DNA of 64,000 nt from Piromyces finnis finn (lineage: Eukaryota; Fungi; Neocallimastigomycota): the NCBI GenBank assembly GCA_002104945.1, contig MCFH01000009.1:310001-374000 (forward strand). The letters are read 5' to 3'. Both the position numbers and the translations under genes were made by a program. This document shows positions 1-46,364 of the stretch, one piece after another (position 1 is the first letter of the stretch; the number at the start of each line of letters is the position of its first letter). A model generated the notes under the pieces. It was not told the DNA's origin. It saw only the letters and a list, made by a program, of their open reading frames with translations, and searched no databases.

Positions 1-3000
1 GGATGCATTTAAGATTGTATATGTTGCTCCAATGAAGGCATTAGTTCAAGAAATGGTAGGAAACTTTTCTACTAGATTAAAACATTTTAATATTAAAGTT
101 GCTGAATTGACAGGTGATCGTCAATTAACTAAACAACAAATTACTGAAACTCAAATTATTGTTACTACTCCAGAAAAATGGGATATTATTACTCGTAAAG
201 GCTCAGATAAATCATATACAAATTTAGTACGTTTATTAATTATTGATGAAATTCATTTATTACATGATGATAGAGGTCCAGTATTAGAAAGTATTGTTAG
301 TAGAACATTAAGACAAATTGAACAAACACAAGAATATGTTCGTCTTGTTGGTCTTAGTGCAACATTACCAAATTATGTTGATGTTGCTACATTTTTGAGA
401 GTTGATCTTAAAACAGGTTTATTTTATTTTGATAATAGCTATCGTCCATGTCCATTAAATCAACAATATATTGGTATATCAGAAAAGAAAGCAATTAAGC
501 GTTATCATTTAATGAATGAAATTACTTACGAAAAAGTTATGGAATCTGTAGGTAAGGAACAAATTTTAATTTTCACACATTCTCGTAAAGAAACAGCACG
601 TACAGCAAAGATCATTCGTGATATGGCTATTGAAAAAGATACAATAGGCCAAATTTTAAAAAATGATTCTGCTAGTCAAGAAATTTTACAAAGTGAATCA
701 GCTACTGTAAAGAATGAGGATTTGAAGGATGTACTTCCATATGGTTTTGCTATTCACCATGCTGGTATGAGCCGTGCTGATCGTACTTTAGTAGAAGATC
801 TTTTCACTGATGGTTATGTTAAGGTTCTTGTTTCAACAGCAACATTAGCTTGGGGTGTTAATTTACCAGCTCACACTGTTATTATTAAAGGTACTCAAGT
901 TTATTCTCCAGAAAAGGGTAGTTGGGTTGAACTTTCACCACAAGATATTCTTCAAATGTTAGGTCGTGCTGGTCGTCCTCAATATGATGTAAATGGTGAA
1001 GGTATTATTATTACATCTCAAACTGAATTACAATACTACCTTTCATTACTTAATCAACAATTACCAATTGAATCTCAATTCATGAAGCGTTTAGCTGATA
1101 ACTTAAATGCAGAAGTTGTTTTAGGTACTATTAGAAATTGTAATGATGCAGTTCAATGGCTCGGTTACACTTATTTATATGTTAGAATGTTAAGAAATCC
1201 AGCATTATATGGTATTTCACAAGAAGAATTAGAAGAAGATCCATTTTTGGAACAAAAGAGAATTGACTTGATTCACAGTGCTGCCATAATATTAGATAAA
1301 TGTAATTTAATTAAATATGACAGAAAACTTGGTAAAATACAAGTTACTGAACTTGGTCGTATTGCAAGTCATTACTATATTTCACATAATTCTATGTCTA
1401 TTTATAATCAACATTTAAAGCCAATGATGAGCATTGTCGATTTATTCAGAGTATTTGCATTATCAGATGAATTTAAGTATATTCCAGTAAGAGAAGAAGA
1501 AAAATTGGAATTACAAAAATTATTGGAAAGAGTTCCAATTCCAGTAAAGGAGAGTGTTGAAGAACCAACCGCCAAAACAAATGTTCTTCTTCAAGCTTAT
1601 ATTTCACAATTAAAATTGGAAGGTTTTGCTTTAATGGCTGATATGGTTTATATTACTCAAAGTGCTGGAAGAATTTTAAGAGCTATATTTGAAATTTGCC
1701 TTAAGCGTGAATGGGCTCAATTATCAAGAAAGGCATTGGAACTTTGTAAAATGGTTAGTCATCGTATATGGTTATCTATGAATCCTTTGAGACAATTTAA
1801 GGATATTCCACATGATATTATTAAAAGATTAGAAAAGAAAGAATTTTCATGGGACAGATATTATGATTTAAATCCACAAGAACTTGGTGAATTAGCACAT
1901 CTTCCAAAAGCAGGAAAATTAATTTATAAGTATGTCCATCAATTCCCAAAATTAGAATTAGAAGCTCATGTTCAACCAATTACTCGTTCATTATTAAGAG
2001 TTGAATTAACTATTACACCTGATTTCCAATTTGATTCAAAGGTTCATGAAGGTTCTGCAGAACCATTCTGGGTTCTTGTAGAAGACGTTGATAGTGAACA
2101 TATTCTTTTCCAAGATGTATTTATATTGAAGGAACAATATGCTGAAGAAGATCATACAATTACATTTACTGTTCCATTATTTGACCCACTTCCACCAAAT
2201 TACTTTATTAGTGTTATTAGTGATCGTTGGCTTCATTCTGAAACTAGACTACCAGTTTCATTTAGACATCTTATTCTTCCAGAAAAGTACCCACCTCACA
2301 CTGATTTATTAGATCTTCAACCATTACCTGTTTCATCATTAAAGAACCCTGAATATGAAGCAATTTATAATAAGGATTTGAAATACTTTAACCCAATCCA
2401 AACTCAAGTATTTAAAACTTTATATAATACTGATGATAATACATTTATTGGTGCTTCTGCTGGTAGTGGAAAAACCATTTGTGCTGAATTTGCTTTATTA
2501 AGACTTTGGGCTGTAAACCCAAAAGCTAGATGTGTTTATGTTGCACCATATGAAGAGATTGTTGAGCAAAAAGCTCGTGAATGGAAAGAAAAAATGGGAA
2601 ATTTACTTGGAGGAAAGAATATTGTTGTATTAACAGGTGAAACTGCAGCAGATTTGAAGCTTTTAGAAAAAGGTGATATTATATTCTCTACTCCACAAAA
2701 ATGGGATATGTTGTCAAGAAGATGGAAGCAACGTCGTAATATCCAAACAATTGGATTATTCATTATGGATGAAATTCATTTCATTGGTAGTGACATTGGT
2801 CCAGTAATTGAAGTTATTGTTTCAAGAATGCGTTACATTAGTGTTCAAACTGGTAATAAAATACGTATTGTTACTTTAGGTGCATCATTAGCTAATGCTA
2901 GAGATCTTGGTGAGTGGATTGGTGCAAATAGTCACTCTATTTACAATTTCCAACCAAATATTAGACCAGTTCCATTAGAAATCTATATTCAAGGTTATTC

Positions 3001-4951
3001 TATTCCTCATTTTGCTAGTTTAATGATTGCTATGACAAAACCAACATATCTTGCCATTACAGCAGGGGAAGACCAATCAGCTTTAATCTTTGTTCCAAGT
3101 CGTAAACAATGTTGTTTGACTGCTGTTGATTTATTAACACTCTGTACTGCTGATGGTGATGAATCAAAATTCTTACATTGTAAGCCAGAAGAAATTGAAC
3201 CATTTATTGAAAAAATTTCTGATAAAACATTAAAGGAAACAATTTCTAGAGGTATTGGTTTCTACCATGAAGCTCTTTCAAAGTCTGATAAACAAACTGT
3301 TGAACATTTGTTTAAGGCTGGTGCTATTCAAGTAGTAGTTGCTAGTCGTGAAACTTCATGGGAAATTGATATTCGTAGTAGTTTAGTAGTTATTATGGGA
3401 ACTCAGTATTTTGCAGGTAAAGAACATCGTTATGTTGACTATCCAGTTATTGATGTTTTACAAATGATGGGTCGTGCTTGTAAACCATCAAATAGTGAAA
3501 GTGGACGTTGTTATTTAATGTGTCAAAGTGTCAAAAAAGACTTTTATAAGAAATTCCTTTATGAAGCTCTTCCAGTTGAAAGTCACTTAAATCATTTCCT
3601 TCATGATCACTTTAATGCTGAAATTGTTACTAAGACTATTGAAAACAAACAAGATGCTGTTGATTATTTAACATGGACTTTCTTATATCGTCGTATGTCG
3701 TTAAATCCAAATTATTATGGTCTTCAAGGTGTAACTCACCGTCATATTAGTGATTATCTTTCTGAATTAGTAGAAAACACACTCTTTGATTTACAAAAGA
3801 GTAAATGTATTACAATTGAAGATGAAATGGATATTAGCCCACTCAACTTGGGTATGGTTGCAGCCTATTATTATATTAATTATGTTACTATTGAAATGTT
3901 TAGTATGAGTTTATCTGAAAATACTAGATTCAAGGGATTAATGGAGATTTTAAGTGCTGCTGCTGAATTCGAAAATATACCAATTCGTCATAGAGAAGAT
4001 ACTGTTATTCGTCGTATCTATGAACATTGTCCAGTTAAATTCTCTAATGCTAGCTTCCATGATTCACATACTAAGACTAACATATTGTTACAAGCTCACT
4101 TCTCAAGACTTCAACTTCCACCAGATTTAGAATTTGATCAAAAACTCATTCTTAATAAGATTATTCCATTAATTCAAGCTGCTGTAGATGTTATTAGTAG
4201 TAATGGATGGTTGACTACAGCCCTTAATTGTATGGAACTTTGCCAAATGTGTGTTCAAGCTGTTTGGAACCATGATTCACCATTAAAACAAATCCCATAC
4301 TTTACAAAAGAAGTTATTAAGAGATGTGAAGATGCAGGTGCTGGTGAAAGTGTCTTTGATATTATGGAAATGGAAGATGATGTTAGAAACAAGTGCTTAC
4401 AAATGAATAATAAACAATTAGCTGAGGTTGCTAAATATGTAAATAGATATCCAAATGTTGATTTATCTTTTGAAATTATGGATAAGGATGAAATTATTGC
4501 AGGTGAGCCAGTTACTCTTAAGATCTTATTAGAAAGAGATGATGATGAAGAGGAAAGTGAAGAAGAAAGTGATGATGATAACATGGATGTTGATGGAAAG
4601 AAATCAAAACAACCAAAGGTTAAGCCAGATATTGGTCCAGTTATTGCTCCATATTATCCTGGTAAAAAGGATGAAGGTTGGTGGATTGTTGTTGGTGATC
4701 CAAAGACTAAACAACTTGTTGCAATTAAGAGAACAACTCTCCAATATCATTCTTCATTTAAGTTAGAATTTATTGCTCCAGAAGAACCTGGTAAATATAA
4801 TTATACCCTTTATCTTTTATGTGATGCCTATATGGGTGATGATCAAGAATATCCTGTTAAATTTACTGTACTTGAAGGTGAAGATGATGATAGTGAGGAA
4901 GAAGAAGAAGAAGAAGAAGAAGAAAATGAAGACAAAATGGACGAAGAATAA
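1..4951 (+). CDS. BRR2: U5 snRNP helicase Brr2/SNRNP200, 5'-truncated by the window edge; no intron in this 4.95-kb portion
   Basis: The frame is open from nt 2 ([17 protein letters not shown]). Two Ski2-like cassettes ([44 protein letters not shown]; second cassette SAGSGKT, DEIH), each followed by a Sec63 unit; acidic tail. Confidence 0.97.
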
Positions 4952-38963: not shown

Positions 38964-39734
38964 GCATAAACAGTAATAACAATAATTAATAACAATAATT
39001 CTTTTATTACTTATAACGTAAATAATTTGATTATAATAAGAAAAAAAATAAATTATTAAAAATATTCATATGCAATTATAATAAAAAAAAATAATATACT
39101 ATTCAATGTTATTATAATAATTATATAATAGCAATACCAATGCATTTATTTATCAAATTAATAGTATAATATTATAAATACATCATAGAAAAAATAAAAA
39201 AATAAAAATTTAATAAAATCTGTTAAAATATAAATTTTAAATATTAATAAATTAATAAATTTTATATATATATAATATCATAGTATATTTCCATATTATA
39301 ATAATATTTATATATAGTTTTTAATGCATATATTTTATATAATAAATAAAAATAAAAAAGAAAATAAAAAAAAATAATATACTATTATAAAAAATAGAAA
39401 TAAATATATATGTTTAAATATTTATTCAATGTAACTATTATTATGTTTTTTTTTTTTTTTTTTTTTTTTTTTTTGTTGTTGTTGTTGCTGTAATAAAAAT
39501 TTATTTTTATTTTATTTTTAAAATATTAAAATTTAACTCCTTAATTTTTTAAATAAATGGTACTGTATGGGCCAATTTTTTTTTTTAAAAAAAAAAAAAA
39601 ATGGTTAATCCTCATTAATATTATTTTTTATAGGTAGATAAAATTTATTATATTTTTTATCAAAAATTCAAATGTTCATATATTTGTAATCTATGTAAAA
39701 TTTAATTATACTATTTTAGATTACAATTAAAAAA

Positions 39735-42700
39735 ATGATAAAAGGAGAAAAAGAATTAAAAGAAACAAATATTCAAGTTGTTGTTCGTTTAAGACCAAGA
39801 AGTACAAAAGAAATAACAGAAAATTCTTCAATTTGTATTACAACTAATGGGATTAAAGGAAAAGAAATTCATTTAAAAACTAATTCATATGAATCAACTT
39901 CAAAAACATATACTTTTGATAGAGTTTTTGGACCAGAAGGTTGATACTATTATATTGAATTATTTAAGGCAATTGATATAAAATTTATGTTAATATATCT
40001 TTTTTATTTTTAAATTAAATAAGCTTCTCAATTCCTAGTATATAATGAAATTGTATCACCTATACTGAGAGAAGTATGTATATTTATTTTTTTTATATAA
40101 TGTTTAAATATAGTATAATTTGAATTTAAAATTAATTATAAATTTATTACAAAAAAAAAAAAAAAAATGGATTTTCAAATTAAAATAGGTATTAAAGGGC
40201 TATAATTGTACAATATTTGCTTATGGACAAACGGTAAATTTAATTAAAATAATATTATATATAAATTGAAATTTCGTATAATTACTTTTCTTCTTTTTTT
40301 TAAATTTTCCTTTCCTATTATTAACTTATATAATACTAAAATAAAATAATTAATTCTTTTTATATTAATTTTAAAAGGGAACCGGGAAAACGTAAATTTT
40401 AAAAAATTTAATGAAAATATAATTTTCAAAATATATTAATTTTTGTTTTATAGATACACTATGGAGGGTGACCTAGTAAATATCGGCGATACTTCAATGA
40501 CAATAGGAATTTACTGTGGAATAATACCAAGAACATTAATGAATTTATTTGAAATACTAGAAAGAGAAAAGGATGAAGTAAATTTTAAATTTTAAAATCT
40601 AAAATTTCAATAAATTTACATTTGGATACAAAATAACTTATTAAAATATATTTTTAATATAAAGTTTTCAGTAAGAGTATCATATATAGAATTGTACAAT
40701 GAACAGCTAAAAGATTTATTATCTATTGACGATAGAAAATTAAGAATTTATGAAGATGTAAATAAGAAAGGCGGTGTTGTAATTTCCAATTTAGAAGAAG
40801 TATTAGTGAAAAGTGCTAAGGATGTTATTCAAATTTTGCAAAGAGGTATATATTTTAGAATCATATAAAAGAAAATATTAATGCTTATTATATGCTAATT
40901 TATTTTTTTTAAAGGTGCCCAAAAAAGACAAATTGCATCAACTAATTACAATTTAAAATCGAGGTAATTTATTATTAATATAATTAACAAGTTGAAAAGT
41001 ACTAAACATTTATAATTTTTTTAAAATAAATAAGTCGTTCTCATTGTGTATTTTCAATTACAGTACATATCAAAGAAACAACACCCGAAGGAGAAGAAAT
41101 GCTGAAAGTAATATATATAAAACTTATTAATATTACTTTTAAACAAGTCTTTATATAACTAATATTAATAAATATAATTATTTGTAAGGTTGGAAAACTA
41201 AATTTAGTAGATCTTGCAGGTTCAGAAAATATTGGAAGATCAGGTGCTGAAAACAAAAGAGCTAGAGAAGCGTAATATATATAATTAAATACTAATAATA
41301 TATGAATTAAAAATAAAATAAAATTAATTTAATAATAAAAAATTCTGTTTATATAAGAGGATCAATAAATCAATCTTTATTGACTTTAGGAAGAGTAATC
41401 AATTCTTTAGTTGAAAGATCACCGCATATTCCTTATAGGTAAATTCATTATAAAAAATGAAAATTAAAAAGAATTATTGTTAATAATTTATATATATAAA
41501 GAGAATCAAAATTAACTAGGTTATTACAAGATTCTTTAGGAGGTAAAAATATAAATATTTATAGGTATAAGTTATATCATTTTTATAAATAAACTAATTA
41601 AAAATTATAGGAAGAACAAAAACATGTTTAATAGCAACAGTATCTCCAGCAAAAAGTAATATAGAAGAATCCATAAGTACTTTAGAATATGCTCATAGAG
41701 CAAAAAATATTAGAAATAGACCAGAAGTTAACCAAAGAATGACAAAGCGTGCATTAATAAAGGATTATACCGATGAAATTGAACGCTTAAAATTGGAATT
41801 ATTAGTAAGCATTAATGAAATTAAGTGTTATTATGTTATTATATCTATTTTCTTCATTTTTATGTTAATTAATATAATATATTATTAGTATTCAAGAGAA
41901 AAAAATGGTGTTTATTTACCATTAGATATATATTCTAACATTGTGGAAGAAAATAGAGTTAATAAAGAGCTTGTAACGGAAATGGAAAAAGAAGTTCTTG
42001 CAAAAGACGAAGCCATGAATGAACTTACAGGAAAATTTGCCTCTCAACAAAATCAAATAACATTTTTATCAAGAAAATTAGAAGAAACAAATGTAAGTAA
42101 AAATTAAATATCTTAAATAATATGAAAATCATATTTACTTATGATTTTATATATAATTTTTTTAATTATAATAATAAAAAAAAATAAATTCTTAAAAGAA
42201 AAAATTAGAATTAACAAAAGAAGAACTTTCAAGAAGTGAAGAAGAATGCGAAATAGCAAAGAAAAAATTGGATGAACAAATTATACTTACTGAAGCACAT
42301 AAAACAACAGAATTAACATTAAATTCGATAGCAAATACTCTAAAAGATTTAATGGAAAATAACTTAAATGATATTAATAAATTACAAAATAAAATAGGTA
42401 TATATTGGATAACAGAATATATAAAAACATATACAAAAGAAGTTTAATGAGTTTTTAATCGTATTATTATTATTAAATAAATAAACACTTTTAGAAAATA
42501 AAGAAATTATATCAAATCAGAATGATGAATTATTTGAATCATTAAAAGAATCTCTTAATAGTAAATTTAAAGAACTTGATGTTAATATTAAAAACTATCA
42601 TAATAAACAATCTGAATTTTCTCAAAATATTAATAAAACAATTAAGGATTATTTAATAAATAATAATAACGTAAGAGCACACTATATTTTAAAAATTTAT

Positions 42701-44198
42701 TAAATTTTGATATTATAAATATTATATACTAAAAAAAAAATATTTTAAATTTTAATTAATTTATTATAAAAAATTAAAACAAAAAGAATATAAAATCTAC
42801 TTATGAGTATTTCGATAAACAAATAGTAGCATTTCTTGACCATTATAAATCAACTAAATCAATATCATTGAATTACCAACTTTTTAATGATTCTATATTA
42901 ACGAAAATTGAAGCAATTCGTTCAAATCTTGTTAGCTTTATAGATCAAAAGAAAGTTGATTCAGAAAATAAAATAAATGAATTATGTAAAAGTATATCAG
43001 AAAAATTGGAAAGTCAAATTTTAAAAGTAAATTTATATATTTATATAAATATTAAAATTAGATTAAATATTATAAAATTGAAAAGTATTATATATAAATC
43101 TAAAAAAAATTTTTTTTACATAATTTTCAAAATACAAGTGGGATGAAAGTATATCCAATTACATAAATAAATTTGTTGAATTCCAAAAAATAATGACCAA
43201 AGTAATTACAAATCAAAATGAAACTATGGATATATTTAAATCAAAAGTTAATGATTTTATGAACGAAAATGTAAGTTGCAATTAAGTATAATTTTCTAGC
43301 TAAATAGATAAGGAATATTAAATTTTATACTAAATTACTAAAAATTATTATTTAATATTAATTTAAGAATCAATTACTTATTTCTCAAAATAATGAGCTT
43401 AAACAATACCAAGAGAATTATTTAAATGAAATAGAGAATAGAAAGAAAATCTTATTAAATAATGTAAATAAAATGATTGAAAGTTTTACTTCTGAAAACA
43501 TCTTATCAATAAATAATATTATTAATATAGTCAATACTTCCAACAAAACTTATAGAAATGATATCCTTTTATTTAAATTTAAAAATATATATAATTAAAT
43601 ATAAATTATAATTATATAAATAATTAACCTTAACAAATTATTACATCTCGGAAGCTTTTCATCATTTATGGAATCTAATATAAATTCAGTCAATAATAAA
43701 TTAATAGAAGATAAAAAATTGATTGATTCAAATTATAATGAATTATATATAGCAATTAAAGATATTGAAAAAGTAACTTTAAGTATAGATATATTAAAAA
43801 TAAATAAACCTTAATACTAATTCTTTAAAATTATAAATTAAAGGTTCCAAAAGAGAATATTAGTATTAACAAAGAAAATATGGAAAATATTAAACATTTT
43901 ATCGAAGAAGACTTCAAGAAAACAAATGATGTATTAAATGAATCCAATCTTAATCAAGAAAAAGAATATAAGAAAGTACAGGAATATTCTGAAAACTTCA
44001 AGTTAACATTAGGAAAAGAAGAGCAAAAAATTGGAGAAATGATTGATAGTAATAAAAAAGATAGTATACAGTTTATTAGTAAAAAAGTTAATAAAAATGA
44101 AAAAAATGTCGATGAATTAATAAGTATTGTTAGTATTTAATTATTATTGTTATTATTATTATATAAATACATTAAGATAACATTAAACTAAAATTATT

Positions 44199-44229
<31 letters not shown>

Positions 44230-44894
44230 TTATTATTTAGATTAATAATAATGAAAAATATAGTAAAGATTTTTGTAATATATTGAACTCTAATATAATT
44301 GTAACAAATGAAAATTTGAACAAAACATATTCTCAAGTTAAGGTAATTAAAATACTTAAATGTTTATTTTTCTTTAAAAAAAAAAAAGAACATCATATAT
44401 TAAAATAATCAAATATAAAACAATATTAGAAATATATACCCACAATGGATACACCAAAGAAGAAGATATATTCATATCCAAAAACTTGGGAATTAACAAA
44501 ACCGCATGGTATATGAATATTATTTTTAATTAATAATCCATATTTTTTTGATTATAAAATATACTAACCTATCATTTTTATATAAGAATTAATAATAAAT
44601 GAATATAAAGAAAGGCAGAAAGGAGATGATACAATAAGCAAACAAGAAACCGATACAACAATAGAAAATGAAAATAATAAATTAAATATTTTAAAAGAAA
44701 ATTCAGTAATATCAAATATAGAATCAGAAAATGAAGACAGCATAATATCATTTAAAGAAAACAAAAAAGTTCCTATAAATAATACCAAAGAATATTCAAT
44801 AAAACCGAAAAAGCGTGCTTTTAATTACACTAATTCGAAAGATCAAGCAGAACCTTTTAATAAGATGCAAAGAATTAATAGAATCAAACAGTAA
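39735..44894 (+). CDS. KIF11: Kinesin-5 (BimC/Eg5/KIF11) mitotic motor, >20 exons, including one AT-AC intron
   Basis: [89 protein letters not shown], and a BimC-box-like [17 protein letters not shown] possible upstream ATG-only exon lies at 39557-39559. Confidence 0.95.
43561..43644 (+). other. U12-type (minor spliceosome) AT-AC intron, 84 nt, phase 1
   Basis: 5' site G|ATATCCTTTT; branch point AACCTTAAC at 43626-43634; 3' site TTAC|. Removal restores the frame (..[13 protein letters not shown]..), while read-through hits TAA. Confidence 0.9.
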
Positions 44895-45367
44895 ATAATA
44901 ATAATCAAAAAATTTATGTATTTTACACATGTAATACATATTTTAAAATTGTTTTAATTATTTAATCTAAAATTTTGTAATTTAATTTAAATTTTGTATT
45001 TGTTTTAAAACTTAAATACATTAACAATTACATATAATCTACATAATGTATATTTCGTATTTATTTTATGTAACGTAACTATATCAGAAAATTAGAGTGT
45101 TATTAAAAAATTATAATATTATATTCTTTAAAATCTAATTCGTTAAAAAATAAAATATTAAAAATTTAATATGTAGATTTTAATTTTATTAAACGAAAAA
45201 AAAAAATTTTATTTATTTATAATAAAAAATTTTTTTTAAATGTAACCATTATTATACATTTGATTGGATAATATTCTGTGGCTGGATGATTTTACAGCTT
45301 TCACTACGATTTGGTTTTGTTGCTTTTTTGCTTCATTATCAATCCCTCTTTACGTTTAATAATTGAT

Positions 45368-45611: not shown

Positions 45612-46364
45612 ATGACCGAAGAAGTTAAAAACCAAGAAGTCGGAGAAGTCGAAGTCGAAAACACTATGGCTGGTACCAGAACCAACCAAAGTCGTTCTGA
45701 AAAGAAGGCTCGTAAGGCTATGGCTAAGATGGGTTTAATTCCAATTAACGGTATTAACCGTGTTGTTCTTAGACGTTCCCAAAACGTATGTTTTAAATGA
45801 CAATGATTAAAAATATGAAATTCAATAGTTGAGATTAAATTGAAAAAAATAAAAAATTTGGAAAATATTTTTAAATGAATTATTTGTAATCAATAATTGT
45901 ATAGATCTTATTCGTTGTTTCTCAACCAGATGTTTACAAGAGTTCTGCTGCTGATACTTACATTGTCTTTGGTGAAGCTAAGATCGAAGATATTAACGCT
46001 AAGGCTGCTGCTATTGCTGCTCAACAACGTAGAGCCCAAGAAGCTGCTGAAGCTGCCGCTAAGAAGAGTGAAGAAGAAGTTCCAGAAGCTGCTACTACTA
46101 CCGAAGAAGATGACAACGAAGCTGTTGACGAAACTGGTCTTGAAGCTAAGGACATTGAATTAGTTATGCAACAAGCCAATGTTACTCGTAGCAAGGCTGT
46201 TAAGGCTTTAAAGAACAACAACAACGATATTGTTAACGCTATTATGGTAAATTAATAATAAAATTCTATCTATAATAAAATTTTTAAAATGGACTATTTA
46301 ATTAATTTATAAATTTTATTTAATATTTTATTTAAACCCATTATTTTAGGAACTTACTATGTAA
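45612..46364 (+). CDS. EGD2: Nascent polypeptide-associated complex alpha subunit, 3 coding exons
   Basis: [25 protein letters not shown]|[29 protein letters not shown] ([32 protein letters not shown]|ELTM). Strongly biased codon usage. Confidence 0.96.

Follow-up and report, generated by a model that had tools for sequence, protein, structure and literature searches.

By which spliceosome is an intron with AT and AC at its ends taken out of a fungal kinesin-5 transcript, and does its removal do anything besides making the coding frame whole? The intron in question occupies positions 43561-43644 of a 64-kb stretch of Piromyces finnis DNA (64,000 nt in full, called "the window" throughout; about 17-19% G+C; all coordinates are window positions and the gene and intron features lie on its + strand). 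The initial annotation read these 84 nt as a U12-type AT-AC intron, the kind that is processed by the minor spliceosome, lying among the exons for the kinesin-5 stalk. That core interpretation is supported by the analysis described below: transcript evidence and conservation across lineages together make this a well-supported minor-spliceosome substrate in an early-diverging fungus.

The kinesin-5 gene and its neighbors

The gene model was built from the joints of transcript contigs together with the sequence of the window. It places a coding region of 23 exons at 39735-44894, with a predicted mRNA of 3350 nt and, once the 84-nt intron is excised, an unbroken frame of 1061 codons. The product is a predicted kinesin-5 of the BimC/Eg5 type by virtue of its Kinesin motor domain and of a match to PF13931, the tail domain with the BimC box. 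The N-terminal motor is recognized by Pfam PF00225 on three separate exons (E 2.8e-12 to 2e-4), and the modelled protein has the P-loop GQTGTGKT. At the other end, the 26 aa of exon 44430-44507 match PF13931 with E 2e-4 and 22.3 bits, a score that falls just below the cut-off of 25 bits because the query is only a fragment; the motif TMDTPKKK of the BimC box stands at about residue 938. Comparing exon 20 with the protein atlas retrieved coiled-coil look-alikes at chance level and nothing else.

The 22 introns of the gene are of two kinds: 21 of them are GT-AG introns of 62-144 nt, and intron 18 is the sole exception. The 21 GT donors are AT-rich, of the form GT[AT][ATG] (GTA(A/T)-type), and none resembles ATATCCTTT, the donor of intron 18; C is found at position +5 in just one of them, and at +6 in just one other.

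Other features of the gene and its surroundings deserve mention in passing. The P-loop residues GTGKT of the motor are encoded by a 14-nt microexon, GGAACCGGGAAAAC, at 40378-40391; AG and GT border it, each of the four runs described below has it in its transcript contigs, and it recurs in identical form in contigs from relatives (L003:432, L004:646, L007:193). Directly downstream of kinesin-5, at 45612-46200, lies a gene for a NAC/UBA_HYPK-domain protein; the same neighbor follows kinesin-5 in the ortholog contigs L001 and L003-L006. The window also holds, at 32-4951, an uninterrupted ORF of 1639 aa that covers the C-terminal three quarters of Brr2/SNRNP200, the U5 snRNP helicase that is common to both spliceosomes. 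Its nearest named relatives are those of chytrids (74% identity for Spizellomyces), which, taken with the extreme AT-richness, points to Neocallimastigomycota; so long a stretch with no intron stands in contrast to the kinesin-5 gene and its 22 introns.

Intron 18 and its signals

Intron 18 (43561-43644, 84 nt, phase 1) separates two exons of the stalk: exon 18 (43368-43560), whose last letters are ...TATAGAAATG with 43560 as the final base, and exon 19 (43645-43772, 128 nt, with the next GT donor at 43773), which opens with ATCTCGGAAGCTTT. Inspection of the sequence shows the intron to begin with ATATCCTTTT at 43561, which has the form /[AG]TATCCTT of the U12-type AT-AC subtype; the 5' splice site as a whole (43561-43569) agrees with the U12 consensus RTATCCTTT. 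Toward the other end, the branch-site box CCTTAAC (43628-43634) corresponds to the TCCTTRAY that is looked for about 10-15 nt before a 3' splice site. The presumed branch A is 43633, the 12th base from the 3' end of the intron, and the box is directly followed by the ten bases AAATTATTAC, which end in the terminal AC (43643-43644). Every base that the initial annotation quoted for these signals is found in the window where it was said to be. The intron is 93% A+T and has no G, and all six of its C residues belong to the three signals: donor box, branch box and terminal AC.

Removing 43561-43644 leaves the frame intact, with the split codon G|AT becoming Asp762, so that the earlier statement that excision of exactly 84 nt is an in-frame event holds for the entire 23-exon, 1061-codon model. 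The premature TAA that had been anticipated for retention is at 43596-43598: reading through into the intron (ORF 43473-43598) meets it 12 codons in. The placement of the splice can be shifted by +1 or +2, AT being common to both sides; the AT..AC placement is preferred because it is the only one of these sliding options that has recognized termini.

How much should be made of such motifs in DNA of this composition? Separately, very little: RTATCCTT occurs eight times in the window against 8.2 expected occurrences, and CCTTAAC four times against 3.9. All eight RTATCCTT matches are ATATCCTT (there is no GTATCCTT), and for none of the seven that remain when intron 18 is set aside does a branch box lie at a distance that could serve. 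The composite signal, defined as a donor box followed after 30-500 nt by CCTTAAC and after a further 6-12 nt by AC or AG, is another matter: it occurs once in the real window, against an average of 0.04 in simulated ones, 11 of 300 of which contain it one or more times. By themselves the motifs are suggestive evidence for an intron; the decisive evidence is that of the transcripts and of the relatives. A look-alike of the branch box, CCTTAAT at 43809, lies within the next GT-AG intron (43773-43843), far from that intron's 3' end, and appears to be coincidental.

Excision from the mRNA

The transcript evidence comes from four public runs (X1-X4) that carry the label "RNA?", a label that is itself a guess. 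Of the words sampled from the gene region, 35-54% occur in these runs, which is what spliced RNA should give, and the contigs come without the kinesin-5 introns. Two contigs bear directly on intron 18. In record 4 of X2, window positions 43368-43560 match record positions 307-499, and the next matching piece resumes at window position 43844 and record position 628; the 128 letters that separate 43560 from 43844 in this record are precisely the length of exon 43645-43772. Record 1 of X1 is a single contig of 3350 nt covering 39641-44964, and 3350 is exactly the length that the gene model gives once the 84 nt are taken out. The excision that joins 43560 to 43645 is thus deduced from the boundaries of contig pieces and from exact length arithmetic, and the joint that had been expected in RNA (43560^43645) fits both contigs. 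The end of the contig piece, the 128-letter exon and the 3350-nt length accordingly place AT and AC at the mRNA boundaries, confirming that the 84-nt intron is removed from mRNA exactly there.

A GT-AG alternative was also considered: a GTTTTA donor at 43483 and a CAG acceptor at 43687-43689 do exist, but the X2 contig runs unbroken over 43368-43560, which rules out their use and bears out the initial annotation's dismissal of this pair.

Two odd joints, 42484->43503 and 41332->41866, with sides of 21 nt, appear in X1 and X2 contigs; foreign letters intervene between the two sides of the former. These joints are most likely cross-matches of low-complexity sequence rather than products of splicing.

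Conservation in relatives

Exon 18 was searched against 1.84 billion representative proteins and matched three short ORF fragments, each of which runs from the exon into the intron: at the border the fragments read (D/Y)-I-L, as N|ATATCCTT does when translated. Ortholog contigs (L001-L010) from JGI, ENA and Logan metagenomes represent three diverged lineages (L001, L003 and L007), in which the amino acid sequence of exon 18 is between 74 and 49% identical to that of the window (74, 52 and 49%). The position of the intron is conserved at all three orthologous loci, where it interrupts the same codon in the same phase. The ATATCCTTT donor and the AC end are invariant across the window and the three relatives, and in each of these four lineages CCTTAA(C/T) begins exactly 17 nt before the 3' end. 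What lies between is freer: the introns are 84, 105, 104 and 198 nt long, and their interiors are barely alignable (23-52% identity, as against 77-92% for the 9+17 nt of the signal stretches). Splicing yields homologous peptides (NDLGSFSS, NDLESFSS, NYIENFSA and NDLESFSS), and unspliced read-through meets stops in every one of the four lineages. End signals that stay fixed while the interior drifts are the pattern that one would expect of functional U12 signals under selection.

In one of the relatives (L003 4188-4385, also L004, L005 and L006), the AT-AC intron contains a (TTTA)n run whose copy number varies among metagenome samples; the interior thus tolerates changes of length while the end signals stay fixed.

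Which spliceosome?

Introns of the U12 type are defined by their donor and branch boxes, and it is highly probable that 43561-43644 is a U12-dependent (minor-spliceosome) AT-AC intron in the stalk-coding part of kinesin-5. Its removal would then fall to the minor spliceosome (U11/U12/U4atac/U6atac), and what is established for that machinery suggests the steps: ATATCCTTT would base-pair first with U11 and afterwards with U6atac, the GUAAGGA of U12 would bind the CCTTAAC box so that the branch A, 12 nt from the 3' end, bulges out, and excision of what lies between G43560 and A43645 would unite G|AT in Asp762.

Is the machinery there? A scan at Rfam gathering thresholds turned up no family, and no snRNA, in the window or in the loci of five relatives. 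Scanning metagenomes for the conserved U12 5' end, CCTTAAACNNNNGAGTAAGGAAAA, gave at least 120 stretches, of which none is below 25% GC among the matches listed; given the GC content of those matches, the scan bears on no gut fungus. Published surveys are more informative: minor introns and minor snRNAs have been reported in Neocallimastigomycetes (PMC10639083, PMC11347168), with U4atac represented by a divergent candidate only. The number of minor introns in Neocallimastix californiae is put at 129 by Olthof et al. [quoted passage not shown] We infer that the minor spliceosome is functional in this organism, in agreement with these surveys of its lineage (PMC10639083, PMC11347168). In the light of these surveys the intron is not surprising, the lineage being already known to keep minor introns (PMC10639083, PMC11347168).

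Alternative readings

Might there be no intron at all, and 43561-43644 be an artefact of assembly or alignment, or a chance pair of motifs in AT-rich DNA? Single motifs are indeed present in the window at chance frequency, as noted above, but the suggestion has to contend with transcript contigs of exactly the predicted length (three studies), with the same structure in independent metagenome assemblies of three relatives, and with the restoration of the frame by this 84-nt excision only; it is scarcely credible. A more substantial question is whether the major (U2-type) spliceosome removes this intron, as it does a few animal AT-AC introns, and here AT-AC termini by themselves do not determine the answer. 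The internal signals are more telling. U2-type AT-AC introns carry ATAAGT-like donors, whereas positions +3 to +9 of this donor read ATCCTTT and CCTTAAC stands 10 nt before the 3' end; the donor and the CCTTAA(C/T) box have remained constant over four lineages while the remainder of the intron drifted; and the U2 donors of the kinesin-5 gene itself are entirely unlike ATATCCTTT. We judge removal by the major spliceosome to be very unlikely.

With the minor spliceosome retained as the preferred assignment, a question about regulation follows: does slow or regulated removal of the U12 intron gate the output of kinesin-5, and thereby mitosis? A retained intron would bring in a stop after 12 codons and cost the protein its tail with the BimC box, and minor-intron retention does regulate some animal genes, according to background cited in PMC10639083. 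The same paper (PMC10639083), however, reports no regulation of minor splicing with the cell cycle in the fungus that it tested, and argues for a mostly neutral persistence; conservation of the signals, for its part, is what any functioning intron would be expected to display. No retained-intron contig is seen in the four runs, but contigs drop rare forms and so are uninformative on retention and on the efficiency of splicing. A gating role is, on these grounds, unlikely. It is also decidedly unlikely that a minor intron is kept, in the one part of kinesin-5 lying ahead of its regulatory tail, because the efficiency of its removal sets the dose of full-length spindle motor; if this were so, an anaerobic fungus would have its mitosis linked to the activity of the minor spliceosome. 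A more modest reading, suggested by the absence of any GTATCCTT from the window, is that AT-AC could be the dominant subtype of minor intron in extremely AT-rich genomes. Intron 18 of kinesin-5 looks, all told, like an inherited minor intron that is removed constitutively, its regulatory role being undemonstrated.

Comparison with known systems

The locus is useful for annotation rather than surprising. Minor introns and minor snRNAs were already documented in Neocallimastigomycetes, and the kinesin-5 intron changes nothing in that account. It can serve as a positive control for the scoring of minor introns and for the correction of gene models in the AT-rich genomes of gut fungi; predictors that allow only GT-AG introns would truncate or distort this kinesin-5 gene.

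The comparison with kinesins elsewhere is straightforward as to architecture and less so as to intron position. Like BimC, Cut7, Cin8 and Eg5-KIF11, the protein has an N-terminal motor, a long stalk and a C-terminal BimC box with its TPKK motif. Intron positions can be compared only inside the gut fungi, since elsewhere the stalk is too diverged. The literature search brought up no paper that describes a minor intron in KIF11; where KIF11 and minor introns are both mentioned, in two papers, they are not linked, and one of these names KIF11 only as a cilium and spindle protein.

U12-type AT-AC introns (Hall & Padgett 1994 and Tarn & Steitz 1996, as cited in PMC10639083) are the class with which intron 18 is most closely allied. 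It shares with them the /ATATCCTTT donor, the AC terminus and a branch box that resembles TCCTTAAC and stands 10-15 nt from the 3' end, and likewise the want of a pyrimidine tract, a phase other than zero, and a solitary place among many U2-type introns. It departs from the typical member of the class in being very short (84 nt) and 93% A+T, and in having A rather than the consensus T as the base that precedes the branch box. The dependence of U12-type AT-AC introns on minor snRNPs is a property of the class, to which the kinesin-5 intron is assigned by its sequence signals. Its place is with the minor introns that have been catalogued in Neocallimastigomycetes (Larue & Roy 2023, PMC10639083; Olthof et al. 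2024, PMC11347168), as one more of the same class.
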